From contig NIVC01000622.1 in NCBI GenBank assembly GCA_002269645.1, forward strand, positions 248,001 to 312,000: 64,000 bases of DNA. Reading direction: 5' to 3'. The position numbers and the translations under genes were made by a program. Positions 22,679 through 56,719 of the stretch are shown here, piece by piece. The stretch's first letter is position 1; each line of letters opens with the position of its first letter. Source of the stretch: Macrostomum lignano (Eukaryota). Under the pieces are notes generated by a model. That model had not been told where the DNA came from. It saw only the letters and a list, made by a program, of their open reading frames with translations, and made no database searches.

Positions 22679-22714
<36 letters not shown>

Positions 22715-22745
22715 GAGTAGGCAGAAAGGCAGGCAGGCAGACAGA
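22608..22745. repeat. (CAGA)n microsatellite
   Basis: Direct inspection. Confidence 0.95.
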
Positions 22746-23054: not shown

Positions 23055-23098
<44 letters not shown>

Positions 23099-26228: not shown

Positions 26229-27111
26229 AAGAGGTCAGTCATTAGGCGTCAGAGGATGCCAGGGTCACTGGCAGGTCAGCGGATGCTTAGAATTACGCCA
26301 AGGTGCTTAACTCGAACAGCCACTCAGCCTGATCCCAATAATCCCTCGCTGCATTGCACACCCAATTTCCCTCACAAAGATGCAAAAAAGCGCACCGTAA
26401 TTCCACATGCTGGAACCATGGGAAGGGTCAGTGAGCGAGGGAAGGAAGAGCGGTTATCCCACACACAGAGGGAATGCAAGCCGACAAAAGGGGGTTTGCT
26501 GGTAAAGTTATTTTAACAAGCCCCGCTCCAGTAACTCTCCTGTATAGAGGCATCCGTGGCCCTTCCAATATTCGGACACACCTTAACAACAAGTTGCCTC
26601 TTTCTGCTTAGTTTATAATGGGAAGAAACCGCGGTGTTTATCCCACAGGAAATCCATTACTTTCAGTGTCTTCCATTACGCTTCGTTTGACACGGAAAGC
26701 AAGAGGCTTGCAGTCGGTGCAGTCGCTATGTAGTGTGTGCAATCTTTTCACAATAAATCTTCCGTTAACTGGTTTTACCGACTGTAATGCGTTCGAGTTT
26801 TGTTAATCTGTGACTTTGTAATTTTACATGCTTTTATTCTCTTTTTTCAATTGGTGCTGTTGCTTTTATGGGCAAGGTTTTCTGCTAATTTTATCGGCTA
26901 ATATACTAAAATACTAAAATACAAACTGCCACACTGTAGTGTTTCTTTATTTAAATAGCGTATCTAAGAATCCGAGAATTCATTTTAAGACTGCCAATCA
27001 TTTTACCAATGTGGTTACTTTCGTCTATGGCTAAAACACTGCTCATGGTCTGGGGCACAGGCACAGCCAGAGCATTGAGTTTGACACAGAGCATTTAAAG
27101 GGCCTGTCAAC

Positions 27112-27430
27112 TTAAGCTCATAAAGTGGAGACTGAGTAATCTAATACGTCATTCCACTCACAGTAGCAATAGGAAGCTGGATTTGGCAAAAAAGTGACCA
27201 TGGACCATGAGATATAAGTGAACAAGCAAGGGAATAATTAGGGACTTCATCTTATGAGCTTACATGTAAGTTTATATAATAGTCCCTAATTATCATTTTG
27301 CTTGTTCTTTCCTATCACAGGTCCAATTTTTGTCGCCTTTTTGCCAAATCCAGCTTCCTGGTGTCGCTGTAAGCAGAATGACGTATTGTTTGTGTACATA
27401 GGTTACTCTGGCTCCACTTTATGAGCTTAA
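27112..27430. mobile_element. Foldback MITE bounded by TTAA
   Basis: TTAAGCTCATAAAGTGGAG at the left end and CTCCACTTTATGAGCTTAA at the right. Internal inverted blocks AGGAAGCTGGATTTGGCAAAAA and ATAATTAGGGACT also pair. Confidence 0.8.
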
Positions 27431-34176: not shown

Positions 34177-34671
34177 CTGTCTCCTTAACTGCAGCTTGAA
34201 CATGTGTTTTCTGTAACTATAATTTCGATACATGTCGGTGCATCATTGCTTTGATGTCTTCTTCTACGCAATCTAATTTTACAAGCGTAAATAATTGGTT
34301 ACTCATAAATCTTAACTGGGTTTCAATCAACCGAACACGTCAGTGAATGAAATGTAACATAAATTTATTTTCCAAGTTTGTCTACTCGTGCTGATTATTG
34401 TGTCAAAGTCATTTTCTAATAGTCATACTAGTCTTGTAAATTATTTAACTAACATTTTTTCAAAGCGCATGCTTATGTATAAAAATAAAAATATGTGTAC
34501 CTGTATTTATCGCGCAGTTACCAACATGCACCCTGCAATAAATACTACTGTTTAATTAAGTAGCTGAGTGAGAAACTTTACAGCCATTTTGTAACAACTT
34601 TACAATCTGATTTTACGCGCTGATGACCTGCGGATCCATGAGAATAGCGATAGGCTAGCAACTGGGAATCT

Positions 34672-35432
34672 AAGAGGCTGGCCCAGCAACTGAGGATCTG
34701 GGAGGCTGGCCCAGCAACTGAGGATCTGGGAGGCTGGCCCAGCAACTGAGGATCTGGGAGGCTGGCCCAGCAACTGACGATCTGGGAGGCTGGCCCAGCA
34801 ACTGACGATCTGGGAGGCTGGCCCAGCAACTGACGATCTGGGAGGCTGGTCCAGCAACTGAGGATCTGGGAGGCTGGCCCAGCAACTGACGATCTGGGAG
34901 GCTGGCCCAGCAACTGACGATCTGGGAGGCTGGCCCAGCAACTGACGATCTGGGAGGCTGGTCCAGCAACTGAGGATCTGGGAGGCTGGCCCAGCAACTG
35001 AGGATCTGAGAGGCTGGCTAGCCCAGCAACTGACGATCTGGGAGGCTGGCCCAGCAACTGACGATCTGGGAGGCTGGCCCAGCAACTGACGATCTGGGAG
35101 GCTGGCCCAGCAACTGAGGATCTGGGAGGCTGGCCCAGCAACTGAGGATGTGGGAGGCTGGCCCAGCAACTGAGGATGTGGGAGGCTGGCCCAGCAACTG
35201 AGGATCTGGGAGGCTGGCTAGCCCAGCAACTGAACATCTGGGAGGCTGGCCTAATGACTGAGGATCTGGGAGGCTGGCCCTGCAACTGAGGATCTGGGAG
35301 GCTGGCCCAGCAACTGAGGATCTGGGAGGCTGGCTAGCCCAGCAACTGAACATCTGGGAGGCTGGCCCTGCAACTGAGGATCTGGGAGGCTGGCCCAGCA
35401 ACTGAGGATCTGGGAGGCTGGCCCAGCAACTG
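34672..35432. repeat. 28-bp GC-rich minisatellite (GATCTGGGAGGCTGGCCCAGCAACTGAG)
   Basis: About 27 tandem copies. Confidence 0.97.
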
Positions 35433-36043
35433 ATGCATGCGGAGGCAGCTTATCTTCGATTTGCAACGGGTAATTTTTCCCAAAAAAATTTCCCAGCCTT
35501 CTGAGTGCCCGACAAGCTGTCAGACTTTTTTGCTTCACACGCTAAATTCTCAATATGATTCCACAGCTGCGCAGAACTTTGTTTGTCGAAAGTGAAGGAT
35601 TTTTATCCAGATTTGCAGCTGCTCAACTTCCCATTTCATATTGCAATTAGCTCAGAAACTGCCAGCTTTTGCTTTTTCTCGCGAACTGGGGATGCTAAAA
35701 AGCTTGATTAGCTGGTATGAGTTGCCCCTAAAGTGGATCAGGCGACAAGCAAGTGAAATTGGAACAAAACGTGAGTGAGATGAGAGTAGAATTCGGGTGA
35801 GAATGGAGTAAGACCTGCGTAAGATTGGAGTAAACATGAGTGAGATTGAAGTGAGTCCAGATCGAAGTTGGGTAGAGTTAGGTGAGATTGTGACATAAGT
35901 GAGATTAGAGTGAGACAGGAGTTAGATTGATTTTTTGGCTATTCGATCTTATCCGCACATGCAGCTCATATTATGATCGTTAAGATCGTACTCATGCTGA
36001 GACAAGAAATATCTTTCTTGTTGATTGTTACGATATTCATGAG

Positions 36044-37473: not shown

Positions 37474-37731
37474 TTCTCCTGAATAGGGTTCTGCAATAGG
37501 CAACTTCGGTGGAGAAAATCCGCACAAGGAAATAATCCACTAAAGAGACACTAAAGAGAATTTCCTTTGAGCTTTGCTATAGCTTTTCTGTCTCTGGTAG
37601 AATATTGTGGGGTAAAATGACTTGTTTAACAATACATTTAGCAGCGAACGCCGCTCTTTAAAGCGAAATTTTATCGGCAATTGTAATTCAGTTAATTCAG
37701 CCGCAGTTGCTATGAAGTGCCTCGCGCGCGA

Positions 37732-38560
37732 TCAGCCACGCTGGTAGAGAGTCCAGTCAGGTCCGGTCAGGCTGGCTGGCGGGTAGACGAACGCCAGCAG
37801 GTGGCAGGCGAGCAGCCGCTTGGAGAAAACGGCGGCCTGGCAGTCGGCTCTGGCGCTGCACTGGAGCAGGCAGTCGGCGTCAGACTGGGCAGCGGCGGGC
37901 CAGACGGAAGTCGATTCGGATGTCACCGGAGGGCTGGACTGTCGCACCACCGTGTAGGTGTTCCTGTCTGACACTGTTTAATTTGAAGTCAGAATTTGTT
38001 TAGCATTTTGATAGTTCTGTACCCAGCAACTGCCAACCCGCTATCTGATGATGTCATTGGTGATTTTGATGCTAGACTTCATAGACTCTATTCCGTAAAT
38101 TGATATTGACATTTTGATGATTCTTTGATAGATTTGATGATTTGAGCAACTTACCGAGATATGTCAGAGCAAACACCGAGTTTCGCCGCGACCCGCCGCA
38201 ATTCTGCAGCGTATTTCCTGGACACGAGTAGTGGCAGTCGGTCTTGTTGGCTTTACCATAGGAACCGAACGAGTTGCCGCAAAAGCACTGTCTGCGGCTC
38301 TGCAGGCCGAAGTACGCAAAGCTGCCTAACGAGCAGATGCCGCTGCAAAACTCGTGCGTTGTCTCACTACCGGTTTGCACGAAGCCGTCAGCAGCCACGC
38401 TAAATTCGCCGAACGTGCAGCTGGCGTTGAGACCGTTCAAATCTCTAGCACTGATTCTGTCCACATAGCAGCCCAGGTAAGAAAATTGAACGGATCTGCC
38501 AGCAACGTTGGTGGTGAGAAGAGCGGCAAAGAAAATAAGTGGCAGTTTCGGGCGAACCAT
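37732..38560 (-). CDS. Secreted WSC + PAN/apple-like protein, copy 1 (exons 38560-38155 and about 37973-37732)
   Basis: Hydrophobic leader; WSC motifs YLGCYVD...RDL...FC...C...YFGLQ...CFCGN...C...C.G....CGG..RNSVF; phase-1 intron; exon 2 with C-x3-C-x5-C...C.LL. Confidence 0.85.
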
Positions 38561-39559
38561 ATCTCTGAACACTGGGTGATTTGGTGATTAGAAGGTATCT
38601 TAGGGAAGTTGACATGTGCAGCTCACAGTTTTTTTGGTCCTACATTTGCTTCTTTGGATCCAATAGTATTGAGTCAATTTTTCACAATGGCAAATTTCTT
38701 TCAACCAATAGAGGTTTAAGAGAACTTTCTCATTGGCCATATTTGATACGAAGAAATTTACTTATGTAGTGAGCCAATAGATTAGCCTGCTAGGTGAATC
38801 GGTAGTTGAACTCAAATTTGTGCGAAAATATGTTATTAGTGACGAAACGTAACAGGAAAACAACAAACAAACGACGAAGGAGGAGTTAAAATGAGTCTAA
38901 TAGCTTTAGTCACTTGGACGACAGTGTCCGACAGTTATATTTACAGCTAATAGTACTCAATACAATACATGATGTTGCCAAACACATAATTTTGATATAC
39001 TTACATGTATACCATAAAAATTCGAAATGCGACTCATCCCTTTTAAATATCTCGTCCAGGGCCCCCTAGTTCGATTGGATGATCAATAAGTACTGATCAA
39101 GAAGAGTTTGTTTGTTTGCTTGCACTTGTTGAGCAGCTTCTTTTTGAGCATGCAAAGGTTCGAAGCCTTAAACTATCTGTCCGCTTTTTCCCTCTCATTG
39201 ATTGTTCTCGGCTTTAAAAGGGAGTTTTTTACCTATTTATAACGTAAAATGATTCCCGTGACAGCCTTTCGCCATTTTCCGTGTCCTTTTTCAAACGCAG
39301 TAAGAATGTTTCACAGGAGTTATTACCTAAAACTACTTCCGGTGAAGCTCCTCAGACTATAAGTACGGACTCCCATAGGCTTGTTTCGGTCAGGCGCTTA
39401 ATCCGAGCAACACCTTTCGTTCTGACTAAGCTTCCATTTGATCCACTGTTGATCTGCACACTTCTGAAAAATTCTGCTTAGAAACTAAAAAAAACATTTG
39501 CTCCCAACGCCGTTGTCACCACTCGGATCAACCAGTGGGTGGCTTCAAAGCACAGGGAG

Positions 39560-40020
39560 AGGTAGACTAACGCGCCCGACTGCCGGCAATTCCGCGCGGC
39601 TTTTCCCTGTCCTTCATCCGCCCTGCGCAAGGCCCTGCTTGGACTCAACCGCAGGGACATCGGGGTGGTGACCATGGCCCTCTTGGGCATGCCAGGCATC
39701 GTTACCTCCAGGGAAAAATCCATAGCGAGAAATTCCCCTCTGCCTCTTCAGTGTCGACAATGAGGAGCACTTTATCTGTAAATGTCCCGTCTCTACTCAG
39801 GACAGGCTCACCTACCTCGGCTCAAACTCGGATCTCTCAGACGTTTTCAGGCCCGAGAATCTCTGCCAGCTCGTCCGCTACCTAAGGGCTACCGGGCGAG
39901 CGACTATCCATCTCCTGGACTCTCCGGAGGGGGACCGCGCTGCAGACACCGGCACCACCGGATCTCCCTGCGCGACACCGCAGCACCAGCTGCCTGTGGT
40001 CGCCAGGGGTTAGCGAAATG
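39560..40020 (+). mobile_element. Decayed 3' fragment of a LOA-like LINE
   Basis: Strongly similar to 63235-63660 but carrying indels. Confidence 0.8.
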
Positions 40021-40574
40021 GACGGCAACGCCTTCTTTCTGCATCCGGTAACTGCACGGTCAGCGGACTTTCACAGGTCCAACAGACCTGAAGGAACTGG
40101 TGGCAGGGCCAAACTGCCCGATGCTACACCCCAAGCTTGAGCTTAGAACGAACTCATGAACAGGAGGTTGAGTTAGACGCAGAGCATCACGCTTATAATT
40201 AGCCAATATTTTAAAAAGACACTACTAACTACGCGTAGTGCCTTAAATGCGAGCGTAAAATAACGAAAAACACAACATAAAAATTTCTTAAATTCATAAA
40301 CTTTGATTATATACCCACTTTCAGTGATCTTTGTCCTCATTATTAATCATCCGGATCGTTTGATAGCAGAGCAATGAACTGACTACTGACTAACAACGAC
40401 CATTGCTACTGTGACTGCTAAAGTAGTAAGTGCTGATCATACTTCAAATAGGTTTCATTTTCAAGATCCTGTGATGCCATGCACTTTGTAACTCAGAGTT
40501 TATTTTAGCAACATTATTGTCCAAAGTTAGTTCGAATGTCTAAAACTCAAGCTCAAAACTCTAACATGAGGCCA

Positions 40575-41309
40575 TCAGGCGCGGGGGAAGAACTCCCCAG
40601 TCACGTTCGCCAGAGATGGCGGCACTCCAGCGAACGGCAGCAGGTAGCACAGGCGCTGATGCTGCGAGAACACCACAGCCTGACATTCGTCGGTTGAGGT
40701 GCACTCAATCAGGCAGGTGACCAGCTGCTCAGATTTAATGCTGCGGTAAGCTGGTCGGGGGAAAGAATCTCCGACAGTGAAGCTGGCGCGATCCACAGGG
40801 ATGTTGAAGCTTTTCATTGCTGAAAATTGATAGGAGCCATGACTTTTGTGCAGTGTTCTGGTAGTATTTAAAAAAATAAAGAGTCACTCACACAAATACG
40901 TCTGAGAGTAGACAGAGTTTCGATTTCGACTGCCGCAGATCTCGCTTGGTTGACCGGCGCAGGTCATTTTGCATTCGGCTTGGTTGGCCGCTCCTTGGGA
41001 GCCGTACGACAGCCCGCAGTAGCACTCCTTGCCGAACTGCAGGCCGAAGTACGGGAAGCCGCCCAGAGAGCAGATGTGGCTGCACAGCTCCAGCGTCATG
41101 GACATCAAGGAGACGCAGCCGATGGAGAGCATGGAGAACTCGGCCAGGCTCTGCACTCCCCGCAGTCCGTGAAGGTCCCTAGTATCGTTCGTCGCGTCCA
41201 CGTAGCATCCGCGATACTCAAAACGGGCGAGTCTCCCAGTAGCGCCCAGAAGCAAGAGGCTCAGGAACAGTGCCACAAAGATCAGTTGCCAGTTTCTCAA
41301 TGCCTTCAT
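40575..41309 (-). CDS. Secreted WSC + PAN/apple-like protein, copy 2 (exons 41309-40892 and 40819-40575)
   Basis: MKALRNWQLIFVALFLSLLLLGATG leader; YRGCYVD...LCSHIC...YFGLQFGKECYCG; phase-1 GT-AG intron; CLIECTSTDECQAVVFSQHQRLCYLL. Confidence 0.87.
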
Positions 41310-42367
41310 GGTCTCCAGTGACAAGCAGCAGCGCTGAGTTTTGTGCTGTTTTTCCGGAAAAGCTTCTGTCAAATCAGCTCGGCTATGATCAAGCGAATTT
41401 ATCCCCAAAAGCCGAATGAGTGAAGTGCAGGACACGGTAAACAATTCAAGCTAACTGGCTGAGTTTGTGAAAGGCGATGGATGGATAGAAAATTGCGATA
41501 ATGAAAAGCAAATAGTTCCAATCAACTCAACCTGACGTACATGCTAATGAAAGACTGATTAAAATATCTGCTGTATATTTGTAGTTGAGTGGCCTAAAAG
41601 CCAGAGTTGTGCAACCCACTCTATCAGCTCGAATGCTTGCTTCACACGTGTGTCAATAAATTCTCATGTGCCAGGACCTGATGCTAATGAATATTAAGTG
41701 TGGCAGTCATCGCACTTAACTGATGTACAGAAAAAAATAATGTTGTACGATCCCCGATTCGCCTAAAAGCAAATTTGAATGAAAGGTCGCTTAATTTGCA
41801 CGAGTAAGTATAAAATGGGCCTCGAGTATTCAGACTATGAAGTCGCCGATGGGACACAGAGAAGCATGTCCCACCCCAGTAAAAGCTGTGGGGGTCATGC
41901 TAATACTTTATTGACCGAAAACAACCTCTTAAACTAACACAGCCTAACGGAAATCTAACAACATTTTAGCACGGGGAGCCAAAAGCATCAAAGAAGTATT
42001 GAACGCTGTAGCAATCTGGCCTATAATGTATGATGCGGCAGCGGTAGGCCGGACTGAGGTTCTTGAAGGCGTCACTGAAGTCACTCAACAATCGGACTGC
42101 TTCACCGCTATGAGGGTGCTTCTGTATGAGACTGTTTTTTTACCTGTAGTGGTGAGGTTCAATAGGTCATTCATTGTAGTTACTGTAGTTAGTTGACTTT
42201 ACATGTGTATTTAGCCAAAGGTCAACTTGGTCAAAACGCGTCAGTTACTTGATCTATATCAGTTGTCGGATTTTATTTGTAGTGTCAAAAGAATACACGT
42301 TTAAGTGAGTTTTAGAGACATCATGACGCTGTAAAATGTAGCTGGGATTATACGGATATGGTTGCAC

Positions 42368-42835
42368 ATGCTATATGGGTATTTCTCTGTATGCAATTGT
42401 CTATGGAAATTTGTCTATGGGTATTTGTCTGTATGCAATTGTCTATGGAAATTTGTCTATGGGTATTTTTCTGTATGCAATTGTCTATGTAAATTTGTCT
42501 ATGGGTATTTTTCTGTATGCAATTGTCTATGAAAATTTGTACATGGGTATTTATTTGTACATAGGCCTTTGTCTGAGTATTTGTCTGTATGCAATTGTCT
42601 ATGGAAATTTGTCCTTGGGTATTTATTTGTCCATAGGCCTTTGTCTATGAGTATTTGTCTGTCGGCAATTGTCTATATGGAAATTTGTCCATGGGTATTT
42701 GTCCATAGGCCTTTGTCTATGAGTATTTGTCTGTATGCAATTGTCTATGGAAATTTGTCCTTGGGTATTTATTTGTCCATAGGCCTTTGTCTATGAGTAG
42801 TTGTCTGTAGGCAATTGTCTATGGAAATTTGTCAA
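42368..42835. repeat. 42-bp minisatellite built from three 14-bp subunits (TGTCTATGGAAATT / TGTCTATGGGTATT / TGTCTGTATGCAAT)
   Basis: Direct inspection. Confidence 0.9.
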
Positions 42836-44404
42836 TAGGTTATGTTCATGTTACTGTGGCTTTTCCTCTTTGCGCCTACCAAAACTGAGCACAAAACTGA
42901 AAAAAATGAAATGAAGGCAGTCAGACAGGTAAATATACTCATTCAACTTGGTCCATCTAGGCTCCATTTTTTTATCACTAAATATTACATTACCTATAGT
43001 AGTCTAAACAAGAAATGGTTTTCTAAAAATATTTTACTACTCCACAGACCAGGGAGTTCTTCCATTGACTTGGCTATTTATCTGTAGCTGCAGTCTATCG
43101 AGTCAAGTAAGTGAATCGATTGAGGCGGCAATCAATGAAATGGGATTTTCTCTTTTTTCCAATTTCAAATTTCAAGGTCTTCCCACTTTCAGCTCAGCTC
43201 CTGACGTCTGTCTCTGAGACAGCAAAAACCTCTGAACTTCGGTGACTGTCGTGCGAGACAGGTTGGTCGTGCGATTCACACCAACGATAGGAAGGTCGGG
43301 GCCGCTTGTACACCTTGTGTGAGCGTGTGTATGAGTGCGTGTCTGCGCACAGCATTGATGCGCTTGCATTGTGCTCAGGAGACAGCGGAATGAGCAGAAT
43401 TGTCGTCAGAGCAGCTTGCGGGACAATGTCTCCGAAGGCGCTGCGCCAGAATGTCCACGGCTATCCTGCAAATGTTTTTTAGCTGCAGCTTGCTTCGAGA
43501 AACAGAATTTTCGAGCTACTCTTTGACAACCTATTTAAACAAAGGTTAGTTGACAAACTGCAAAGAGGTGATGCTTTTGATGCTTAAGTCTCACGATCTT
43601 AAGAAGGCTGCTCACTGCTGATTACACTCCGGAAACTGATTGACAGCAGAAAACTCTAAAGCACTACTTCACAATTCAAAGCAATTCTCAATTCCAGAGT
43701 CAAGTATCCATGTTACTAGATTATTGTTATAAAATAATTCAATTGAGCATTTCTCAATTAATTCGAATTAAAAGCTGAATTGAGTGAAATCGATTACCTA
43801 ACTGACGTTCGAATTTAACAGCAGTGAAATTCTTGTTTCCAGACATGGACTCCTAGATTCTCCTAGGTGCTTAAATATAGTCCTCCATATTCTAGGGCGC
43901 ACTTGTTGAACCCGGCTCTCGGAGGAACAAAAAATTCCTAGTAAAATTAAATAGGCCGGTGTTTCGTCTGTCAGGCTGGAAGAAAAACAACCACCGGGGC
44001 CAGGGACCAACACACTAATTAACTGGAATTGACCTCTACTTACACCCCTAAGCATATCTTATGCAGTTAGCAAATTGGTCAATATTTAATTTTTGAAAAA
44101 TCCCAACGTAGATGGGCACAGGCAAACAAAACAGCACGCTGGAAAGTCCACCGGTTAATTAATTAACAATTACTTTAAGTAAAATATGCAGAAACTGACT
44201 TTGTAGAAGCTTTGGATCCAACAAACGCCGTTTTACTTAAATATGCACTGATCAAACAGAGAACGCCAAAAAGCATTTTCCACCTGACTCTTGTCGAGTG
44301 GTGTGTTTCCGTATTGGTTGGTGAAAAGCTCAATCAAGCTGAAAGCTACTCGTGGCGCTTTGGAATGTTAGATTGATCGAAAACGAGACTGTTTCAAAGC
44401 GAGC

Positions 44405-45133
44405 TCAGCCGCGCTCAAAGAAGTCTCCATCGGTGCTGCTCAGGCTGGCAGGTGGGTAGGCGAACCTCAGCAGGTGGCACAGGCGCTGCTGGCCAGAGAA
44501 AATCACAGCCTGGCAGGCAGCTGAGGCCTCGCACAGCCCCATGCACTCGACGTCGGTTCGGGCGCCGCTGGTCCAGTAGGTGCTCTGGGTGGACTCCACC
44601 GTCTGGTTGGGTCTTTGCGACGGCACAAAATACTTACTATCTACAAAATTTACATAAAATTTTACAAAATTAACCGAACTCAGGATTGAAAGTCAAATAA
44701 AATGATTATAATAATTACAGGACAGACTCAAAAACTCACTCGGATAGGTCAAAGCAAACACGGAGTTGCGCCACGTGCCTCCGCATTTAGGAGCTCCGTT
44801 CCCAGCGCAGACACGGTTGCAGTCGGTCCCGCTAGCAGCTCCCAGAGATCCGTAGGAGGTGCCGCAGAAGCACTCTCTACCGATTTGCACACCGAAGTAC
44901 GGGAAGCCGCCCAGAGAGCAGAGGCTGCTGCAGAGCTCGTGCGTCATATTAGCACTGCTCAGCATGAGGCGGCCGGTGTTGAAATGCCCGATTCTGCTTA
45001 CTCCGGTGAGTCCTCTCAGGTCTCGGCCTCCGTTGTCCACAAAGCAGCCAATGTAGGACACCTGAGCTACCCTACGGGCAGCACAAAGCACTGGGACGGC
45101 GAGACCCACAATGCAGACGATTGTCTTGAGCAT
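44405..45133 (-). CDS. Secreted WSC + PAN/apple-like protein, copy 3 (exons 45133-44740 and 44640-44405)
   Basis: Leader MLKTIVCIVGLAVPVLCAA; YIGCFVDNGGRDL...YFGVQIGRECFCG...CGGTWRNSVF; phase-1 intron; CMGLCEASAACQAVIFSGQQRLCHLL. Confidence 0.87.
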
Positions 45134-45149
45134 AGTTACTTGGGTAGAT

Positions 45150-45764
45150 CACAGATACTAGAATAACTAGATGTGTCACTCGCAAAAAATGCGTTTCTCT
45201 ACTTTTTTTTCAGTAGCAAAATTAGCGTTTTTTGCCTTTATAAAAGTGAAATTAAAATTTATCTACTTCTGAACGAAATTTAAAGTTTTTAAAGCTGCAA
45301 AATTTGTCTGTGCCTGATTCTACAAGCAGGCTAATTAAATAAGCATGTCTGCTGAGTTTTACCGGTTCAAAAATAAACGAATTTAAGACTTAAGACTGTA
45401 GAAAACTACAAAAATGTAAAATTCCCAAATTCAGTGCTTGGCATAGAGAGCAACAGAGAATAGTGCTGGCGCCCAGACATCTCTACTGCTCTCTCATTGG
45501 CTGAGCTAGATTGGGCCTGCCCCCCCCCCTAGGCTGAGTTTCGTCCGTCTTGCGTTCATTTGTGTACATTGAGTTAGCAAATGCTTGTTGATTCTTAACC
45601 CCATATGCTCTTGAGGCCGCAAGCCCTGAGGAAGAAAAGGAATTTTACCTTCTACATCAAATTTAAATTACATTAGCGCAGACAACTACTGAAAAAAGAG
45701 TAGAGGCTCTACTTTTTCACAATTTTAATTGCGAGTGACATATCTAGTTATTCTAGTATCTGTG
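45150..45764. mobile_element. hAT-like MITE, 615 bp
   Basis: TIRs CACAGATACTAGAATAACTAGAT(G/A)TGTCACTCGCAA. 8-bp TSD GGGTAGAT at 45142-45149 and 45765-45772. Confidence 0.88.
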
Positions 45765-46072
45765 GGGTAGATGGGATTTCAGTTCTCCTGTTGCTCATAG
45801 GAGTGTAGGAAGAGATGAAAACTGCAGTACTTGCTTTTATACCGATTTTAAAAAATGATCTGGTTTGATAAAAACCAGTGCACTAATGAGCGCAATGCAT
45901 TAGTTCCAGTAGCTTATGTAGCTTCTAAGAGTAATTTTAACTTCACTTGATGATATTTTCTGAGCAGCCCGCAGCTCTCCAGACTCTAATTTAGATGCCA
46001 GCAAATAAAAAACAATTCTCATTTAATTTTTGCTTACTCGAAATGCTTATTCAAGAAACCAACTCCCACTGT

Positions 46073-46475
46073 AAAGACCCTGTTGCTAAAGACCCTGGCG
46101 CTAAAGCCCCTGTTGCTAAAGACCCTGGCGCTAAAGCCCCTGGTACTAAAGATCCTGGCGCTAAAGCCCCTGTTTCTAAAGACCCTGGCGCTAAAGCCCC
46201 TGTTGCTAAAGACCCTGGCGCTAAAGCCCCGTTGATAAAGATCCTGGCGCTAAAGCCCCTGTTGCTAAAGACTCTGGCGCTAAAGCCCCTGTATCTAAAG
46301 ACCCTGGCGCTAAAGCCCCTGTTGCTAAGGCCCCTGGCGCTAAAGCCCCTGTTGCTAAGGTCCCTGGCGCTAAAGCCCCTGTTGCTAAGGTCCCTGGCGC
46401 TAAAGCCCCTGTTGCTAAGGTCCCTGGCGCTAAAGCCCCTGTTGCTAAAGACCTTGGTGCTAAAGCCCCTGTTGC
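46073..46475. repeat. 30-bp (2x15) minisatellite GCTAAAGACCCTGGC-GCTAAAGCCCCTGTT
   Basis: Direct inspection. Confidence 0.93.
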
Positions 46476-48139
46476 AGAGGCATTTTTGAATTAATCCAAT
46501 AATTTTTCGATCGGGTATACGCCAGAAGTTCGGCTCTGCTCACGGTACGGGCAAGTTACTAAGCAAACATAATTTACGTAAGGTTCTAGTTGTCCACGGG
46601 CTTGGCTATCTTGAAAAGAAAAGAGTCGAAGGTCAGCGGCGGAATGAACACCCAGTCAGGGAGATAGATATATTTACGTCAATTCAAACCTAATTACGTT
46701 GATTGATTGATTGATTGATTGATTGAAAACAAAGGCCGGGTAAAAAAGTATCTTAGCTTACTATGGTGCAAGTCAACCACTTTGTACTGAGTACTGTCAA
46801 TACGACTTCAATTCCGGATCACCAACTGAACATAATGCATAGCTCGTAGGCTACCATTTTCTTGATTTTTTCAAGCGCAAGTCAGGGGCAGCCAGTAATA
46901 ACGATAGAAAGTTAGAGTGCTACTTTACGCTAACAAAACCACGGCAGGACGAAGAGAGCATAGGGAGGATTACGCCACTTGTAGCCCGTCAGAGGGTAAT
47001 AACAGAGGAGAAAACAAAAATGACTTCAGACGATATCGAGACACGTTCCAGTCTCAACGCCAGCCAAAACCGACTCACAACTTATGCAACTGACCAGTTA
47101 AGTATGTAGAAAAATGATAGAGCTGCCTAAAAGGCACTAGATTAGTCAGAATGCTATCTACTAAGATTTTCATATTTAGCCAATACATTGAATCATGTCT
47201 TAGATTTCTCAAGCAAAAAAGGTTGAGAAATCTTTTTTTGAGGTTGAGAAATCTTTCTTCAAAGACATCTGTCTGTGATGCGTTCCTTACTACCAAGACT
47301 TTCTCAGTAATCAAGGAACAATCACTTCTAGCTACTTGCTAGGCAACCCAGTTATCAATTAAAGGTACTTCTTACCTTGACGTCGTTTGGAGATATCTCT
47401 TCTGTAGACTTCGAGTAGAACTCGCGTGGATCTCTTTGTGATCTCGTAGATCAGGCGCCTTGATTCTTCAGTTGCTCTGGTCCTGGTTCTTCTTGTACTT
47501 CCGATGAGGTTCCTTCCGGCCGGTGTCTTCAGTCAGGACCAATCAGAGGCCTCGTATCAAACAATAATGGGTACCCTGCGCCGAACAGCGGTTTCTCGTT
47601 AGCCTTCTCCTTCTAGCAGTGCCTCTATGCACTCTAGGTAATGCTCCGGTTATCTCTAATAGATCCTCTAAGATCTATTAGGGTAGTCCTTCGGGTGACT
47701 ACTGCCAATGGAGTCTCAATGGACTCAAGAGTCTCAACAGACTCAACTAGACTCAAGAGTCTCAACAGACTCAACTAGACTCAAGTCACACTAGACTTGA
47801 GCGAGACGTCTCAAACACAGGCGCAAATGAGAAAGGCTTACCGCAACAACTCGACCGAGTCTCCATTGACTTGGTAACCAGGAAGTCTTGCTAAGGGCTT
47901 CCTCTTCGGAGCGCTCCTCTTCCGTGGGGAGAATGACTCCGGTACCGCTTTGGACCGCTTGTATTTATAGACGATTTTGTGGGCCAAAAATAGTAACATG
48001 ACTCATGTGTTGCGCTAGAAATAGTAACATGATTCATCTGCTAAAAATAGTAACATGAATCATCCTTAAGTTTAGGTGCGCATGCGTGCACTTACTTACT
48101 TATAGTAGCATTCTACGATTCTCAATTTACTTCTTTGCG

Positions 48140-48331
48140 GGAGGTAGAACACTCTACATCTGGCCCGCCGCTGCCCAGTCTGACGCCGACTGCCTGCTCC
48201 GGTGCAGCGCCAGAGCCGACTGCTGGGCCGTCGTTTTCTCCAAGCGGCTGCTCGTCTGCTACCTGCTGGCGTTCGCCTACCCGCCAGCCAGCCTGACCGG
48301 ACCCGACAGGACTCTCTACCAGCGTGGCTAA
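48140..48331 (+). pseudogene. Orphan 5'-truncated PAN exon of the WSC-PAN family, inverted orientation
   Basis: WPAAAQSDADCLLRCSARADCWAVVFSKRLLVCYLLAFAYPPASLTGPDRTLYQRG*, nearly the same as exon 2 of copies 1 and 5. No WSC exon is visible upstream. Confidence 0.75.
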
Positions 48332-49458
48332 ACGCGGGACACTGCATGGAAACTGGATGGCAACAGATGATGCAAGTACTGTCAATCCTTGAAAAATTGA
48401 ATTCTGGAAAATTTTCCATGGTATCCGAGCCCCAAGACACAGATAGTGTTACACATACACGCTTGGCACTGAGAAAGTCCGGGCCGCTGTACACTCTGCA
48501 TGCGTGAGCGTTTTATGAGCATATCGGCAAAATGGCGTAACTTTTACGGGTCAGCTGTTGAATTGACTTGCGGCAGTGCCCCAAGACCCCTACAAAACAG
48601 GCAATCGAGAAATTTTAGACATTGCCTATTAGACGGAGGCCAAATGAGAACAACCCCAATGGCTGTCAGTGTATTGTTTCGCTTTACCTAACATGGGCAG
48701 AGACTTACTTTGTAAAGATTTGCCACTGGTAAACAGAATTGGCCTGTGGCAAACAGCAAACTCCCAGTGTAGGGTGTATCCTAATTTCCGTTCCACCATC
48801 TTTAATTGAAGTTAAAAAGTCACGTTTCACATTTTGGTTTTAAACTTCCTCCCAACCCAAGACTAACAAAACCGGAACGATATTTATGCCTCTGACTTAA
48901 GTCAGCTTTCAAGGAAAGAACTGTATTTCAGAAATTAGCTAAACCTACAATGACAGATGCCTACTTACATATATTGAGTGATGAAGACGCGAAGAAAAAG
49001 TTTTATAGTTAACCAAATTTACATCGCAGTAAGGGAGAAATCAGCTTCCTGAAGAAAAATTTCACTGTTCCTAGCTAAAAACGCACTGACAATGGCAGTG
49101 ACAATGGCCCAGACCAACTTCGAAAAAAATAGAAAGTCCGCCATGGTTTCCGCTTCTTTCATAACTTTCGCGGATCCTGAAACGGGATAGGTTCTATCTA
49201 CCTATTGACAATTCTTTTCTGTAGGGCGAAACCCCTTCTCTTTCATCCAGAAGTAAGGCAGGAGTTCACACTACTGAGTATAGCGTGAGAACTCTTCTGA
49301 ATTTCTTCGATTGTTAATCGATTCCAGCTTCAAATTCAATGCGTAGAAACGTGCTACGAGCTAATTTTGTTTCTCTGCAATCTTTCTGCAATTTTTAGTT
49401 TGCTGATTAAAAAAATCCGGGCAAAACGTTTGACTTAGAGTATGGCTGTAAGCTAAGC

Positions 49459-49635
49459 GCTAAGCCACGCACGAACAGGGTGTTCTCAGTCCGGTCGGGT
49501 AGGCGAACGCCAGCAGGTGGCAGGTGAGCAGCCGCTTGGAGAAAACGGTGGCCTGGCAGTCGGCTCTGGCGCTGTACTTTTCCGCCGACTGGAACGTGAA
49601 TTCAGAAGTCGACGACTAACGCACCTGGAAGACAA
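49459..49635 (-). pseudogene. Degenerate orphan PAN exon with internal deletions
   Basis: Contains the SARADCQATVFSKRLLTCHLLAFAY block. Flanking segments are deleted relative to the intact copies. Confidence 0.7.
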
Positions 49636-50221
49636 AAGACTTTTTTTACCACCTGTCTAGATGTTCTTAGCCAAACTTGTGTAAAGACGCAGCGAATGTG
49701 CGCCGTGCAAGTGGGATTTCAACCTACTATATACGCCCATATACAACAAAAGCAAAATATTAGATCAAACCAACTAAAATCGATCACTGGTTCCAGGTCT
49801 AGCAATCGCAGTTTTTCCGGTAAAACTTGCTTCCAATGCAATAAAGCCATCATGATTTGGAAATTTAGCATAATCCTACTTAAGTACTGCATGGGGAAAC
49901 GCAGAAATATTTTGAAACTCTGCTAATTATGATATTTGAATAACCCAGGAGAATTCTACATTTCAGTAAAGTGATAGCTGCATGGTGTGTATTATTTTAG
50001 CAACGCTTAGGAAATATGCGTAACATGTTTCAACATGCGTAAAACCATTTAAATCCAATACAAAATTCATCAAACCATGATTTTGCTTAGCTAATTCTAG
50101 TCTCTGTTTACAAAGGATGCGCGAATGTAACAGTGCAGATAAAAAATCTGCTAGTGAAGCGTGTCGAAAGAGAGCAGATAAGAAGACACAATATAGCATA
50201 GTATAATATAATGCAGCATAG

Positions 50222-51107
<886 letters not shown>

Positions 51108-51645
51108 TTCCTGCTGAGTTGAACTCTGCGAGAGCTCGTTTGGAGCTCGATTTTTCCGATCGCTGACTTTCCATAGTTATTTTTTTCATTGCCAACAATT
51201 TGTTTTTCACTTTTTGGAAACCACGGCAACATTCCTTGTTTTTCTCCGTTTTTTATCACAATCCCCAAAAGCAGAAAAAATGCTTCAACATGCAGTTCTG
51301 TTAAAATTTTCTACACAATTAAACCAATCCAATGGGAATTGTCTTCCGCTGTTTTGGGAAACTTGCTGTATTGATGATTCCAATCCCGGATGAAAAAAGT
51401 TTATCGAAATCGAAATTTCCAAATCATTAAACTGCATCATTGAAATGTTAGCTATAGTATTTTTTTGGGGTCTCTGACGACTTCCTTTTGTTTCAGTCAT
51501 GTAGTTTTTATTCTTTCAGTGTTTTAGCTAGCTCTGCCGATGATAGAAGAATGGACCCCACTTAAATAATGTTCACACTCGTTACAACTCGTTGCAAAAG
51601 TTATCGATTTTAAGTTTCCAGTTTTGTTTCAACAGGTTTCCGCGC

Positions 51646-52396
51646 TCAGCCACGCACGTAGAGAGTCCAGTCGGGTCCGGTCAGGCTGGTTGGCGGGTAG
51701 GCGAACGCCAGCAGGTGGCAGTTGACCAGTCGCTTTGAGAAGACAGCGGCTTGGCAGTCGTCTCTGGTGCTGCACTTGGCCGCGCAACGAAGAGCCGAGT
51801 TGGCAGCAACCGGCCAATGCACAGTCAGATCGCACTTCACCGGTTGATTGGACTGGTCAATCATCATATAGGTGTTCTTCGAAGCTTTTTGGTGAAGAGT
51901 ATGTCGATTTTTATTGTTACATGTAAGTACATAAGTCAATACCTTAATTGAGCATATAGTAGATTCAGCACATACCGAGGTAGGTCAGAGCATAAACCGA
52001 GTTTCTGTTGCTGCCTCCGCAAATCTTCGTAGCGTCACCTGCGCATGGCTTGTTGCAGTTGCTCTCAAGGTCCCTATCCAGCGATCCGTACGAGTTGCCG
52101 CAGTAGCAGTCGAAATTGTTCTGCACTCCCGAGTACCCAAAATTGACCAGAGCGCAGATGGCGCCGCATAGCTCTGGCGTCATCGCTGTGCCATCAGTTA
52201 CGCGCGTGTTGGAGACGCTGTAGGGCCCGATCTGGCTAAAGCCGCTCAGCCCGTCCAAATCAATATCGTCATCGTCATCGTCGTCGTTGTAGCAACCCAG
52301 GTAGGTGAGGCGAGCAAACTTTCCAGCCACGCATGTCAAGAGAGCGCTAAGAAGCAGTGTCTGCAGGCGGATTCTGCAGCTCATTTTTGCACTCAT
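51646..52396 (-). CDS. Secreted WSC + PAN/apple-like protein, copy 4 (exons 52396-51976 and 51884-51646)
   Basis: Leader ...RLQTLLLSALLTCVAG; YLGCYNDDDDDDDIDL...LCGAIC...DCYCGN...CGGSNRNSVY; phase-1 intron; CAAKCSTRDDCQAAVFSKRLVNCHLL. Confidence 0.85.
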
Positions 52397-53042
52397 GAAG
52401 CACTAGGCGGGTTTTTCAAGGCTTAAAATTGGAATGAAATTTGAAACCAAGTATTAGAATAAATTTAAACAATGTGCCTCATCCAATAGGATGAGGGAAA
52501 TTCAAGGGCATTTCTTCCAAAATGCTTCTATTGGACTTAAAACTGTGACACTTGAAACTGGTAGGAAATTATTTGCCAATAGAGTTACATTTTGAATGCT
52601 TTTCTGAGACTGTTTTTCACCTCTGTGTCAACTAAAAACCCAAAGGAAAGTTCTAGTTGATGATTATTAAGCTGAATTTTGAAAGTCGAAATTGAAAATC
52701 GTTTCAAAATTTTTTAGAGAGATTCATCAATACCGAGAATCTACTAATCAGATAGAAACATCGATGCTAATATTAAAGTTTTTTGTTTTACAATGGCGCT
52801 TGTACTAACACAGACCATAGTGGCAGTGTTTGTCAGTCAAATGGGCGTGAGCCAGATTTGACAGTAATATTTTATTGCCTATGTAGCGACACAGGTGATA
52901 TTTCAGTGCCATATTATTGCTGCATGCGTGAATATTTTGAGGCAACATGGCATTACATTTTTCTCACCAAGAGAGGAGGAAGAGATGCTTTGCATCTGCC
53001 GACAAAATCTTCTTGACATTTCCTGTGGTAAAGTTGCGCGTC

Positions 53043-53445
53043 TGACGAAAAGCAAAATTGAGAACGTGAGCGCTATCATTTTTGTTATGCGAAATGTTTC
53101 GCCTCGCGTCAGGCATCGTCAGGCTCTTAAAATTTTTGTTACGATGTATTTCTTTATTTACTTATATTAAGCAATTTAGACAAAAACGGGTCGATAAAAG
53201 TCAGAAAATGTATGTAAATTAACAATGAGGGGGAGAGATGGAGAGAGAGAGAGAGATGAGCACAAGTGTACACCTAGAATACTCTAAGGAGGGCACTTTG
53301 TCTAAATTGCTAAATATATGTAAATAAACAAATACATCGTAAATAAAATTTTAAGAGCCTGACGATGCCTGACGCGAGGCGAAACATGTCGCATAACAAA
53401 AAATGATAGCAGCGCTCACGTTCTTAATTTTGCTTTTCTTGACAT
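53043..53445. mobile_element. Foldback (inverted-repeat) element of about 400 bp with a hammerhead-like motif in each arm
   Basis: 53043-53183 is the reverse complement of about 53298-53445. The spacer contains a short (GA)n. Confidence 0.8.
53357..53392 (+). ncRNA. Minimal hammerhead ribozyme motif
   Basis: GC CTGACGA T GCCT-GACGCG-AGGC GAAA CATG TC GC: core boxes, 4-bp stem II, palindromic ACATGT stem III and a GUC triplet. Stem I is weak. Confidence 0.6.
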
Positions 53446-55019
53446 TTTGATAACACATGAGCAAAGTCTACGTCGTAGCTGCAATGACATCAATTTTCAA
53501 GTTTAAGTAAAACTCTGCCAAGTACGAGCTCAAATGGTTAACCTCAGTTAATGTTCCGGAAACTGCACTGAGAACTGAACATTTTTGTTCAGAGAATGGA
53601 AGGCAGAGAAACTCAGCGGTAAACGCTCCTGACTCTCGCGTCTTGACCCCTGATTCGATTCGATTCTTGGCTTGATTCGAGGCTTGCGCACAACGAAAAT
53701 GGTCCATTGGGTTTGTCGTGCGATTCATAATCATGATGGCCAACCCCCAAAACACGGAGAATGTACATGCCTGACGATTAGAAAGTCAGGACCGCTGTAC
53801 ACCCCCGTGTGAGCTTATGTATGAGTGCGAGCTCGCCTGTGTGCTCGTATTGGCAGCAGTATTGGTGTGCTTATATGTACTCAGGAGTCAGCGGACTGGG
53901 CAGAATCACCGTCAACGCTGGTTGTGGGAAGTTAGCACCACACGCACAGACAAAAGCACAGGCCAGCCCCCCCCCCCGGTACTAAAGCTGGGTTGCACAT
54001 CGGCTTGCCTCGATGCCAATGTCTACGGCCCCATTGCAATTAGTATTATTATTCAAGAAATGAGCAACAAAATAACAGCATAATATTCAGGAGCAATACT
54101 TATAATATTCAGTATCATTAATTAATTATAGCTTAGTAGTATTCTCAAGTAGCATATGAGTAGCAGACTAAATTGCAGACTAATTTTAGGTAATTTTTCA
54201 TATGACCACGAGGCTTTCCTATCCTACGAATTTGACGCCAAAACACTAAAGCTGTTAAATGCAAAGATTGGGTCTAAGCCAGATGAAATTTATCAAAGGA
54301 TATTGTCACTCTTCATCAGCATAAAGCGTTTAGGCAATTTGTCTGGATAATGCCTAGTATTCATGTCGTGTCGTAGCAATAAGAAGGACTCTTTTCTATT
54401 TAAGAGAGCTCTTAGCTGAGCATAGAATACGAGACTGCAACTGATAGCCAAACCGGCCTTTAAATTAACTTGAAAACGACCGACGGCAACATGCCGCCTA
54501 CATTACGAGTACAGCGCGATCAAAATTTAAGCTTTAGCATATAGATAGAAAGATGCAACGTGCTGCGCGTGCACACTAAGTACATTGTTAATGAGTACAC
54601 TAGATATTAAGTGCGCAGATACGCAAGGCGAGTCAGAGATAGTTGACGAGCCCCGGCAAGCGGCGCCACAATTCAGAAATACTTCCCGTACTATAATTCA
54701 CCGGCATTCGTAGACCGAACAGTATCATCCTAACTTAAAGTATGGATGCTAAGTGTTGCTAAATGAGGACCATTTATGGTCCGGGAGTGAAAAGTAGCTT
54801 TATGTACTCAGGCAGGTAAAGGGCCTATGAACTTAAGCAACAAATGAATGAAACACTCAACTAGTGACAAGTTTTCAGTGCGAACCACTTCAAATTTGAC
54901 CCAGGACTACTCCGTTGGAGGTTAAAAGTCCGACTTAACCTCATCCGTGGGAACGGACTTCTGTGCGCAGAGCTGTGCTACACCTGATGCAGTGCAACTA
55001 TCACGATCGAATCTGCTTC

Positions 55020-55560
55020 GTGCACAAAAACGGGTTGGCATTAGTTGTGACTTGTACGTCGTCACATTTCAGCCAGTCTCCTCCCTGCAGCACGCAGCAG
55101 GTGTAGTAGCCGTGCGCGAGAGAGCTTCCGTGATGCGACAGTGTGGAAATGGGGTATTCGAGGCTGGACACGCTGCCAGCACAACTGCACCAGTTGATGC
55201 TACTGTAAAGCTTCTGGCCACGCTGTCCTGTTCAGTCGAAGTGAAGCAACGTCACTCGACCAGTGGACACCCGCACCTCCTTCACGCATTGCTCTGCACA
55301 GCTCGCAGTGCTACACGGCACTCGCTGTGGTGCTGTGGCCACTGTGTACAGGCCATCGAGACTGAGCGGCTGGCTGGTGAACTGGTGCAGCAGGATGGTG
55401 AGCACACGGCTGTCTGTGGATTCTGTGGTGGAATCCACAGCTGTGGCAGCCACTGCACGGGCGAAGTATCGAAAACTCAGTGAGGCAGCTGCCTTTGAGC
55501 GTGAGATGCGGAATGATGCACTCCAACAGCTCGTTCGTGCAGTGCTGCTACCTCGGCTGA
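55020..55560 (-). pseudogene. Degenerate ubiquitin-specific protease (peptidase C19)-like fragment
   Basis: Minus strand SHHGSSLAHGYYTCCVLQGGDWLKCDDVQV resembles the USP His box (H.G.S..GHY....W..CDD..V). Upstream CxxC-like remnants. Stops and frameshifts present. Confidence 0.5.
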
Positions 55561-55978
55561 AACTTCTGCAGGAACTGCAGCCTCACTGCTGCCAGGGCCA
55601 GTTGCCATGGCAGCCAGCAGACTGCGCAGCGAGTTGTCGATTTCACTGCCTCGCTAAATCCACTAAATCCAAAAAGCTTTCTACTGAAGTTAAACAACTA
55701 ACTCCACAGTAAGTCAGTCCCCGGCTACCTGAAAAATTTTTTAACTTTGTTTAGAAAAAATGCACTGGCAATGCCTCTGTTTTTCACGAACACATTCACA
55801 GGAAATAGGAAACCAGGCATACGAATTCAGCTCGTATAAGTAAATTTTGGTGTTAAACTTCATTTTTCTATTATTTATTAAACGACCATCGCTACCAGCT
55901 TTTGAGTTAATCGATAAAAAAAACTCCGGGAAAACGTTTGAGTTATAGCATGACCGTAAGCCTCTCGGAGTTGCGCGC

Positions 55979-56719
55979 TCAGCCACGCTGGTAGAGAGTC
56001 CAGTCGGGTCCGGTCAGGCTGGCTGGTGGGTAGGCGAACGCCAGCAGGTGGCAGGCGAGCAGCCGCTTGGAGAAAACGGCGGCCTGGCAGTCGGCTCTGG
56101 CGCTGCACTGAAGTAGGCAGTCCGCGTCAGACTGGGCAGCGGCCGGCCAGGCTGAAGTTGAGTCGGAAGTCACCGGAGTACTCGACTGCCGCACCACCGT
56201 GTAGGTGTTGTTGCCCAGACCTTTTAAAAAAAAATAAACTGTTTTGTCTCAGCTTTTATGCATTAATTCAGTGCATGTCACTGAATTCTATTAGGCTGAA
56301 AGGAGGTGCATACCGGTAAAAGTCAGAGCAAACACCGAGTTGCGATAACGTCCTCCGCACATCTTATTTGAGTTTCTAGGGCACTTCATGTTACAGTCGC
56401 TCTCGTTAGCCTTGCCGTACGATCCGTAGGAGTTGCCGCAGAAGCACTGCTTGCTGTACTGCAGCCCGAAGTAGGCAAAGCCGCCAAGAGCGCAGATAGC
56501 GCTACAAAACTCGGGCGACATCTCTCTGTCATTCCACACGCACATGGGATCAGTAACGCTGAACTCTCCAATGCGGCTGGAGTTACTCAGCCCGTTTATG
56601 TCTCTGCTGGCACCCTCTACGTCTACATAGCAGCCCAGATAGGATAAGTGCAACAGCCTGCCAGCGGCGCAGGCCAGGGCGGCGCAGAGCAGAAGCGATA
56701 GGCGAATCGTGCGTTGCAT
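55979..56719 (-). CDS. Secreted WSC + PAN/apple-like protein, copy 5 (exons 56719-56314 and 56220-55979)
   Basis: Leader MQRTIRLSLLLCAALACAAG; YLGCYVD...FCSAICALGGFAYFGLQYSKQCFCGN; phase-1 intron; DCLLQCSARADCQAAVFSKRLLACHLL. Confidence 0.88.

Follow-up and report, generated by a model that had tools for sequence, protein, structure and literature searches.

Tandem genes for predicted secreted WSC+PAN proteins with a mosaic second exon in Macrostomum lignano

The array and its gene models

The window analyzed here is a 64,000-nucleotide stretch of Macrostomum lignano contig NIVC01000622.1, positions 248001-312000. Window 22097-27419 agrees in every base with positions 270097-275419 of this contig. 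Positions 37732-56719 carry, all on the minus strand, five intact two-exon genes (g1 to g5) that encode small, predicted secreted proteins composed of a WSC domain and a minimal PAN domain. The span is exact, from the stop codon of g1 (37732) to the ATG of g5 (56719). The models were obtained from the DNA by joining long open reading frames (ORFs) at canonical splice sites. In each gene the first ORF opens with a hydrophobic N-terminal leader and stops a few codons past a conserved ...NSV(F/Y)xLxY... motif, while the cysteine-rich C-terminus is found in a second ORF located 72-181 nucleotides (nt) downstream. The introns are of the GT..AG type, lie in phase 1 and occupy the same protein-alignment column in all five genes. 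In g1, the donor reads TATCTCG/GTAAGT and the acceptor AAACAG/TG (slashes mark the junctions). We infer the splicing of g1 to g5 from these sequences and from public gene models of paralogs. A polyadenylation hexamer (AATAAA or ATTAAA) is present 71-338 nt past every stop codon. A tblastn search of the five proteins against the whole window returned five full copies and two exon-2-only fragments, and nothing further.

The exons are listed below with protein lengths in amino acids (aa) and Pfam scores in bits. The core is the last part of exon 2, and m1, m5 and the proteins with P numbers are relatives from outside the window that are introduced further on.

38560-38155, minus strand: g1 exon 1 (215 aa, intron 181 nt), with ATG, signal peptide and WSC; supported by ORF, donor site and WSC at 48.6
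37973-37732, minus strand: g1 exon 2, with linker, 4-Cys PAN and stop; PAN_1 at 25.0; homogenised core 37732-37903, 96.5% nt identical to g5/m1
41309-40892, minus strand: g2 exon 1 (220 aa, intron 72 nt), signal peptide and WSC, the most divergent copy; WSC at 54.5
40819-40575, minus strand: g2 exon 2, PAN with a divergent, non-homogenised core; PAN_1 at 22.9; core 51-61% nt identity to all others
45133-44740, minus strand: g3 exon 1 (209 aa, intron 99 nt), signal peptide and WSC; 81% nt identical to m5 (NIVC01000462.1)
44640-44405, minus strand: g3 exon 2, PAN; in a subgroup with m5, P0016 and P0019
52396-51976, minus strand: g4 exon 1 (219 aa, intron 91 nt), signal peptide and a WSC domain that contains a poly-Asp insert; 98.6% identity to PAA47794.1 (P0245) across 138 aa
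51884-51646, minus strand: g4 exon 2, PAN; PAN_1 at 22.3; core 83-84% nt identical to g1 and g5
56719-56314, minus strand: g5 exon 1 (215 aa, intron 93 nt), signal peptide and WSC; WSC at 60.6; AlphaFold2 predicted local distance difference test (pLDDT) 77-92 here; Foldseek matches to Kremen and Wsc1
56220-55979, minus strand: g5 exon 2, with linker, PAN and stop; homogenised core 55979-56150; identity breakpoint at the W-P-A-A-A-Q codons

Domain architecture and fold

Pfam recognizes WSC (PF01822) in all five proteins at 48.6-60.6 bits, well above the gathering threshold of 27.8, and PAN_1 (PF00024) in all five at 22.3-25.0 bits, a small margin over its threshold of 21.4. The PAN_1 match covers only profile positions ~12-58 of 76. 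The defining features of WSC domains, for which we follow PMC9024836, are eight cysteines, a CGG motif and the fold. In an alignment of 16 family members, the eight WSC cysteines (C30, C72, C76, C92, C94, C109, C113 and C121 in g5 numbering) and the four cysteines of exon 2 are invariant or nearly so, and G122 is near-invariant. Four of the five window genes encode the CGG motif, g2 having CGS instead, and most of the aligned proteins keep it. The exon-2 cysteines C170, C174, C180 and C192 are invariant and their pattern lines up with that of SML-2 and MIC4. True apple domains of the factor XI and prekallikrein type have six cysteines, including those of a third, outer disulfide; exon 2 has four conserved cysteines and no such disulfide, so that 'minimal 4-Cys PAN' is the right description of the second domain.

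When all PDB sequences were searched with a profile built from the C-terminal domain alone, the top matches were exclusively PAN/apple proteins (SML-2, E 8e-7; MIC4 apple domains, 5.6e-5; HGF N, 2e-4). The AlphaFold2 model of g5 has a mean pLDDT of 71, with block means of 75-92 in the WSC domain (residues 21-130) and values of 60-75 in the C-domain. Foldseek pairs the WSC part of this model with Kremen1 (5FWS, E 3e-6) and with Wsc1 of yeast (7PZ2, target-normalised TM-score 0.68-0.74). The C-domain matches SML-2 (2YIL) with a probability of 0.98 and a root-mean-square deviation of 2.2 Å over 51 columns, followed by weaker matches to MIC4, HGF N and plasminogen PAN at a probability of about 0.4-0.5. 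Together, the profile and model matches indicate that the exon-2 domain folds as a PAN domain. According to the structure of Wsc1 (PMC9024836), a WSC domain is a PAN/apple fold around which a long loop is wrapped, and the two share both helix-to-sheet disulfides. The g1-g5 proteins are therefore tandems of two related modules.

The leaders of g1 to g5 open with a charged n-region that is followed by a hydrophobic core, and positions -3/-1 are occupied by small residues. Over windows of 19 residues, the mature part stays below a Kyte-Doolittle value of 1.6 in all five, hence no transmembrane segment is predicted. Kringle and CUB domains gave no Pfam match in g1 to g5, which sets them apart, along with the missing transmembrane segment, from Kremen-type receptors. 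The predicted products are thus small (~190 aa mature), secreted, disulfide-rich two-module proteins. A preliminary description of the locus had proposed five same-strand copies of one architecture over precisely this span, with signal peptide, WSC domain, phase-1 intron, minimal 4-Cys PAN domain and no transmembrane segment. The gene models and Pfam assignments bear this out, including the predicted secretion and, with the PAN_1 cut-off reached in all five and the PDB profile and Foldseek matches in addition, the PAN nature of the second domain.

Relatives and further arrays

All relatives of g5 with an E value below 1e-30 come from M. lignano and are labelled 'WSC domain-containing protein' or 'hypothetical protein'. 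A profile search of 1.84 billion representative proteins placed many multi-WSC proteins from other organisms among the best 150 matches. The proteins with both domains that were checked, ten looked up among these 150, are all from M. lignano. For matches outside Macrostomum that run beyond the WSC domain, Pfam gives WSC only and no PAN. So far, the WSC+PAN family thus appears in M. lignano only; as this covers the best 150 matches and other Macrostomum species are barely represented, weaker WSC+PAN proteins may exist elsewhere. The literature searched contains no description of a WSC+PAN family of Macrostomum.

Two further tandem arrays, of four and three copies, are present on contig NIVC01000462.1. 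Six of these seven copies (m1 and m3 to m7) are intact and share the same intron; one is a pseudogene. In the coordinates of the two extracted loci, L001 and L002, the copies referred to here are:

L001 6500-7300: pseudogenised family copy
L002 6043-6781: m5
L002 10217-10955: m6
L002 17277-18017: m7

Copy m5 is closest to g3 (81% nt identity in the WSC region), and m6 and m7 carry a g1-type linker. The array at NIVC01000462.1:674-695 kb may be a duplication-derived paralogous counterpart of the g3-g1 part of the window array. The preliminary description had seen here a lineage-specific tandem expansion without a recognized family name. Both points stand, given the arrays on two contigs, the exclusive origin of the full-length relatives checked and their generic labels.

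Public gene models reflect the array imperfectly. The 1074-aa model A0A1I8IQU1 is a run-on of several family units, each with its own leader. The model nearest to g4, PAA47794.1 (P0245, BOX15_Mlig009878g1), with the identity given above, uses exactly the junction predicted for g4 (...ALTYL/A/SKNTYMM...), after which it runs out of frame. It is probably transcript-derived, an indirect conclusion, because identifiers of the MligNNNNNN.gN type are transcript identifiers of the Mlig_3_7 assembly. The public models P0245, P0185 and P0017 end in alternative frames after frameshifts, which may be assembly indels or real pseudogenes. Exon 2 of g5 occurs in the public sets only inside the 394-aa chimera A0A1I8J5B6 (P0154), whose C-terminal 80 aa are 100% identical to it. 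This chimera combines a WSC exon 1 foreign to the window, kinase exons 92.6% identical to the kinase of the window (61185-61913) and a g5-type exon 2. It illustrates how automatic models mis-join genes of the WSC+PAN array, and, judging by its composition, a duplicate of the region may hold one more family member upstream of its kinase gene.

The entry Mlig025595.g1, listed as 'Ubiquitously expressed' at a low level and in a 20-species orthogroup (PMC8662610, Table S1), was set aside as unreliable. Its identifier mapping is doubtful because the orthogroup alignment has ~304 codons against a 136-aa, exon-1-only NCBI protein.

Old WSC exons and a mosaic PAN exon

To compare segments and estimate substitution rates, the coding sequences of the eleven intact copies (g1-g5, m1, m3-m7) were used. 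The WSC exons are 54-66% identical at the nt level in all pairs except g3/m5 and m6/m7. Their rate of synonymous substitution (dS) is 1.2-2.0 in divergent pairs, i.e., saturated, and the ratio of nonsynonymous to synonymous rates (dN/dS) is 0.20-0.38 for most pairs, rising to 0.69 in the most similar pair, m6-m7. These values show the WSC exons to be old, divergent and, as judged from the substitution pattern, under purifying selection. ORFs, splice sites, leaders and the 12 conserved cysteines are intact in g1 to g5 despite the saturated synonymous sites.

The end of exon 2 follows a different pattern. Over the last 47 codons, g1, g5, m1, m3 and m4 are 94-96.5% identical at the nt level with a dS of 0.09-0.19. 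The near-identical core of ~170 nt is thus shared by five of the eleven copies, spread over three arrays and two contigs, while the WSC regions of the same copies are just 56-64% identical. The cores of g4, m6 and m7 are intermediate (72-84%), and g2, g3 and m5 stand outside the identical block. The preceding 30-codon linker groups the copies otherwise, g1/g5 being 76-82% identical to m6/m7 and 60-66% to m1/m3/m4. Pairwise identity is about 55% before the W-P-A-A-A-Q codons, rises there abruptly to about 96% and stays high through the stop codon. Between g1 and g5, codons for the same amino acid differ in 4 of 46 cases in the core versus 31 of 66 in the WSC exon (Fisher p=1e-5). GC content at third codon positions (GC3) amounts to 0.77-0.87 in the core and to 0.64-0.77 in exon 1. 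The copies compared have no similarity in their introns, their upstream regions, or their 3' flanks or untranslated regions.

The two exon-2-only fragments are orphan copies of this core, both located between g3 and g4:

48159-48329, plus strand: orphan PAN core of 171 nt, from the 'WPAAAQ' codons to the stop, inverted; found by tblastn, 93-95% nt identical to g1/g5/m1
49496-49577, minus strand: second orphan PAN-core fragment of 82 nt, 96% nt identical to g5

The two fragments share the 5' boundary of the homogenised core, and the larger one, which begins precisely there, carries several non-synonymous changes. Together, the two fragments form an 82-nt inverted repeat (I1), 1.2 kb apart. No exon-1 relic was found beside them, even at E<=10. 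As these evidently non-coding fragments are still 93-96% identical to the genes, recent copying is indicated.

This mosaic appears best explained by gene conversion between non-allelic copies, probably with a GC bias, or by copying of a cassette of ~170 nt, having occurred repeatedly and superimposed on ancient WSC paralogs. Selection at the protein level alone cannot erase synonymous differences. Identical C-terminal cores also occur in UniProt proteins of other accession series than the entries derived from NCBI/Mlig_3_7, e.g., A0A1I8FU86. We take this series to stem from an M. lignano assembly that was made earlier and independently, in which case the identical cores are unlikely to be an artefact of assembly. 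The mosaic evolution of exon 2 and the two orphan fragments are new relative to the preliminary description.

Proposed function and competing explanations

We propose that the secreted WSC+PAN proteins act outside the cell as lectin-like adaptors. The variable WSC 'head' would recognize differing glycan (or protein) ligands, and the invariant PAN 'tail' would dock all members onto one common partner, which may be a matrix component, a receptor or each other. Non-allelic gene conversion would hold this tail uniform. Secretion from a gland is likely, with seminal fluid as one candidate among several. As a whole, the account of a tandem array of five functional paralogs that encode lectin-like adaptors with a converted PAN tail seems probable to us. 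In a more far-reaching form, which we offer tentatively and consider doubtful, the family would be a flatworm-specific lectin repertoire of the 'variable head, constant tail' kind: dozens of old WSC heads, one PAN docking module held identical throughout the genome by active copying of the ~170-nt cassette, of which stray pieces lie in the array, and a gland secretion facing foreign surfaces, be it partner tissue or sperm in seminal fluid, or microbes.

PAN domains engage in protein-protein and protein-carbohydrate contacts (PMC9024836). The preliminary description had called WSC a carbohydrate binder, and this holds for fungal WSC modules, which bind xylan, chitin and beta-1,3-glucan (PMC11611005). 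For Kremen it needs a qualification: PMC5014086 presents Kremen as a co-receptor for Dickkopf proteins with an ectodomain built as a rigid kringle-WSC-CUB unit, and its WSC domain is known from a protein co-receptor, not from a lectin.

Several observations weigh against our account. None of the five window proteins occurs in exact form in a public collection of 15 billion proteins, and for g1, g2, g3 and g5 the closest public sequences reach no more than 40-62% identity. PAN_1 scores just 1-4 bits over its cut-off, and the pLDDT of the C-domain is moderate (60-75). The core could also owe its very low synonymous divergence to nucleotide-level constraint instead of conversion. Moreover, conversion tracts do not usually end as sharply as the identical block does on its 3' side, at the stop codon.

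One possible, though not probable, explanation for the expansion is that these are seminal-fluid proteins of the prostate gland cells, passed on at mating, in which case family growth and WSC divergence would reflect sexual selection or conflict. Many of the 76 prostate-limited, mostly secreted M. lignano transcripts match WSC by BLAST (Table S1 of PMC5977470 contains 'WSC' 17 times). Among them, Mlig-pro46 resembles WSCD2 and Mlig-pro5 carries two WSC domains, and the published WSC-type candidates likewise map to multi-copy loci. A direct link was looked for among 18 listed candidates and their primers, out of the 76 in the full list. None of the 18 candidates tested by RNA interference (RNAi) maps to a family gene identifier (Weber et al., 2018/2019), and none of 36 primers for RNAi or in situ hybridisation matches the window or the two other arrays with <=3 mismatches (PMC6953679; bioRxiv 10.1101/734301). 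The peptides encoded by the primers of three WSC-type candidates (LHGCYL, QGCYLHS, GCYFHSK) are unlike the YxGC[YF]xD start of the family and suggest other subfamilies, and the amplicons of two of these candidates (455 and 771 nt) exceed one WSC domain. Family gene identifiers were not found in the literature and supplements searched, with no match in full-text search or in the supplements of PMC7336406 and PMC10092323. In addition, a WSC dN/dS of 0.2-0.4 is no signature of positive selection.

Similarly tentative is the suggestion of the preliminary description that the proteins are lectins of the epidermis or of glands that serve in mucus, in adhesion to the substrate or in the recognition of microbes. 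They are predicted to be secreted and consist of two modules with glycan-binding relatives (for WSC, the fungal modules; PMC11611005). The nearest PAN structure is that of a galactose lectin, and a diversified WSC repertoire would suit pattern recognition. None of this sets a role in mucus, adhesion or microbe recognition apart from one in seminal fluid. The proteins Mlig-ap1 and Mlig-ap2, which serve in M. lignano adhesion, are large and have other domain make-ups, which counts against this role. The literature context favors gland secretions such as seminal fluid at least as much as mucus, adhesion or microbial roles.

The near-identity of the PAN core could also stem from a nucleotide-level element in the last 170 nt of the coding sequence, such as an RNA structure, a small-RNA target or an overlapping reading frame. 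The block indeed has a fixed starting point and extends exactly to the stop codon, and in several copies exon 2 can be read through in alternative frames or on the antisense strand. Within the array, such frames span every exon 2 and include:

37717-37971, plus strand: ORF over exon 2 of g1
44452-44673, plus strand: ORF over exon 2 of g3
51735-51926, plus strand: ORF over exon 2 of g4
56026-56319, plus strand: ORF over exon 2 of g5
55878-56108, minus strand: ORF over exon 2 of g5

These frames are most likely open because GC3 is about 0.8, and the high GC3 that accounts for them also suits GC-biased conversion. RNA of the core shows no gain in folding over dinucleotide-shuffled controls (z = -0.05 and +0.53). 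Moreover, g2, g3 and m5 keep the protein domain without the identical block, and the orphan fragments retain their identity though non-coding. A nucleotide-level element therefore seems quite improbable to us, and conversion of the cassette remains the preferred explanation. That some or all of g1 to g5 are silent or decaying duplicates, and hence unannotated, is hardly likely: the exact proteins are missing from public sets, a pseudogenised copy exists elsewhere (L001 6500-7300) and the public models P0245 and P0185 are frame-shifted, but all five genes have intact ORFs, splice sites, leaders and 12 cysteines in spite of saturated synonymous divergence, dN/dS is well under 1, and the near-identical public model of g4 uses the junction predicted here.

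Comparison with known systems

By descent, the nearest proteins are unnamed M. lignano paralogs (A0A1I8GNZ2, A0A1I8GI38, A0A1I8FU86, PAA47794.1). These share the ~210-aa layout of signal peptide, WSC and PAN, the same intron and the organization in tandem arrays. They are 46-62% identical to the window proteins, apart from the g4 case with 98.6% over 138 aa. They are paralogs, not the window genes themselves, and come without a described function. The prostate candidates Mlig-pro4, -pro5, -pro11, -pro46 and others resemble the window family in being secreted, WSC-containing products of multi-copy loci of the same organism. However, they apparently have two or more WSC domains, PAN is not reported for them, and no identifier, primer or sequence linking them to the window family was found.

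More distant systems share single modules. Wsc1 (7PZ2), Kremen1 (5FWS) and the WSC modules of fungal copper-radical oxidases have the fold, the eight cysteines and the CGG motif in common with the window family. The window proteins, in contrast, have only WSC and PAN and lack the transmembrane anchor, kringle, CUB or catalytic domain of fungal and animal WSC proteins. The PAN domain shares the core C-x3-C-x5-C-x11-C pattern and a helix-on-sheet fold with Sarcocystis SML-2, Toxoplasma MIC4 and the N domains of HGF and plasminogen. Compared to the apicomplexan PAN lectins, it lacks the outer apple disulfide, occurs as a single copy and is fused to WSC; sugar binding is putative. Oomycete CBM1-PAN/apple proteins of the CBEL type are likewise small and secreted and combine a carbohydrate-binding module with PAN/apple. 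The design is alike, yet the sugar module is CBM1 instead of WSC, the organisms belong to another kingdom and homology is confined to PAN. By design, the oomycete CBM1-PAN proteins and the apicomplexan PAN lectins are thus nearest to the window family.

Surroundings of the array

The neighboring genes look ordinary and give no functional hint for the array. The remaining features of the window are:

2856-4604, minus strand, with 4553-4945: Penelope-like retroelement ORF, reverse transcriptase followed by GIY-YIG, both under the Pfam cut-offs
6679-8481, plus strand: protein with an INTU/CCZ1/HPS4-type longin domain
12635-13294, plus strand: small ankyrin-repeat protein with a lysine-rich tail
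15245-19984, minus strand: element of the long interspersed nuclear element (LINE) type with reverse transcriptase and RNase H; its upstream ORFs have no Pfam match
24097-25419, plus strand: intronless gene for a 440-aa imidazolonepropionase (Amidohydro_1/3)
54947-55712, both strands: GC-rich stretch between g4 and g5 in which ORFs overlap, those of the plus strand measuring 149-178 aa and those of the minus strand 56-73 aa
61185-63046, minus strand: protein-kinase exon adjoining an ankyrin-repeat ORF
63210-63623, plus strand: C-terminal fragment of a related LINE-type element

The imidazolonepropionase shares only 44-53% identity with its orthologs in other animals, and the top matches included none from another flatworm. 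It is 100% identical to a protein encoded on two M. lignano contigs of GCA_002269645.1. On NIVC01000217.1 the protein is identical and the surrounding DNA differs (1002 ungapped mismatches over 5.3 kb, window 22097-27419), from which it follows that the region exists in at least two diverged copies. The public family model P0009 carries, joined to its N-terminus, a LINE-type fragment of the same kind as that at 63210-63623. The two longest plus-strand ORFs of 54947-55712 have no Pfam match.

Stretches dense in satellites and microsatellites lie at 2086-2399, 10180-10829, 28954-31312, 31632-32286, 33012-33485, 34657-35433 and 50218-51105. They include a 22-nt unit repeated 105 times, 15-nt and 28-nt arrays, (ATAG)x222 within the gene array and (GA)x157. 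Such repeats yield long spurious ORFs, e.g., 49963-51210.

Significance

The domains described here are already known and the paralogs in databases are unnamed; a stand-alone secreted WSC+PAN family in tandem arrays is not known to have been described. Four of the five genes seem to have no matching public model, and expression screens based on annotation would therefore miss g1, g2, g3 and g5. Likewise, probes or RNAi constructs directed at exon 2 will cross-react among paralogs because of the near-identical core. M. lignano is an experimental model in which RNAi and transgenesis are established and whose secreted proteins of reproduction and adhesion have been studied widely, which makes the family directly testable. 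The exon-level mosaic, with one domain saturated and the other at ~95% identity, is a clean natural case of partial concerted evolution. The interest of the family lies chiefly in this tidy concerted evolution at the level of a domain, combined with a tractable model.

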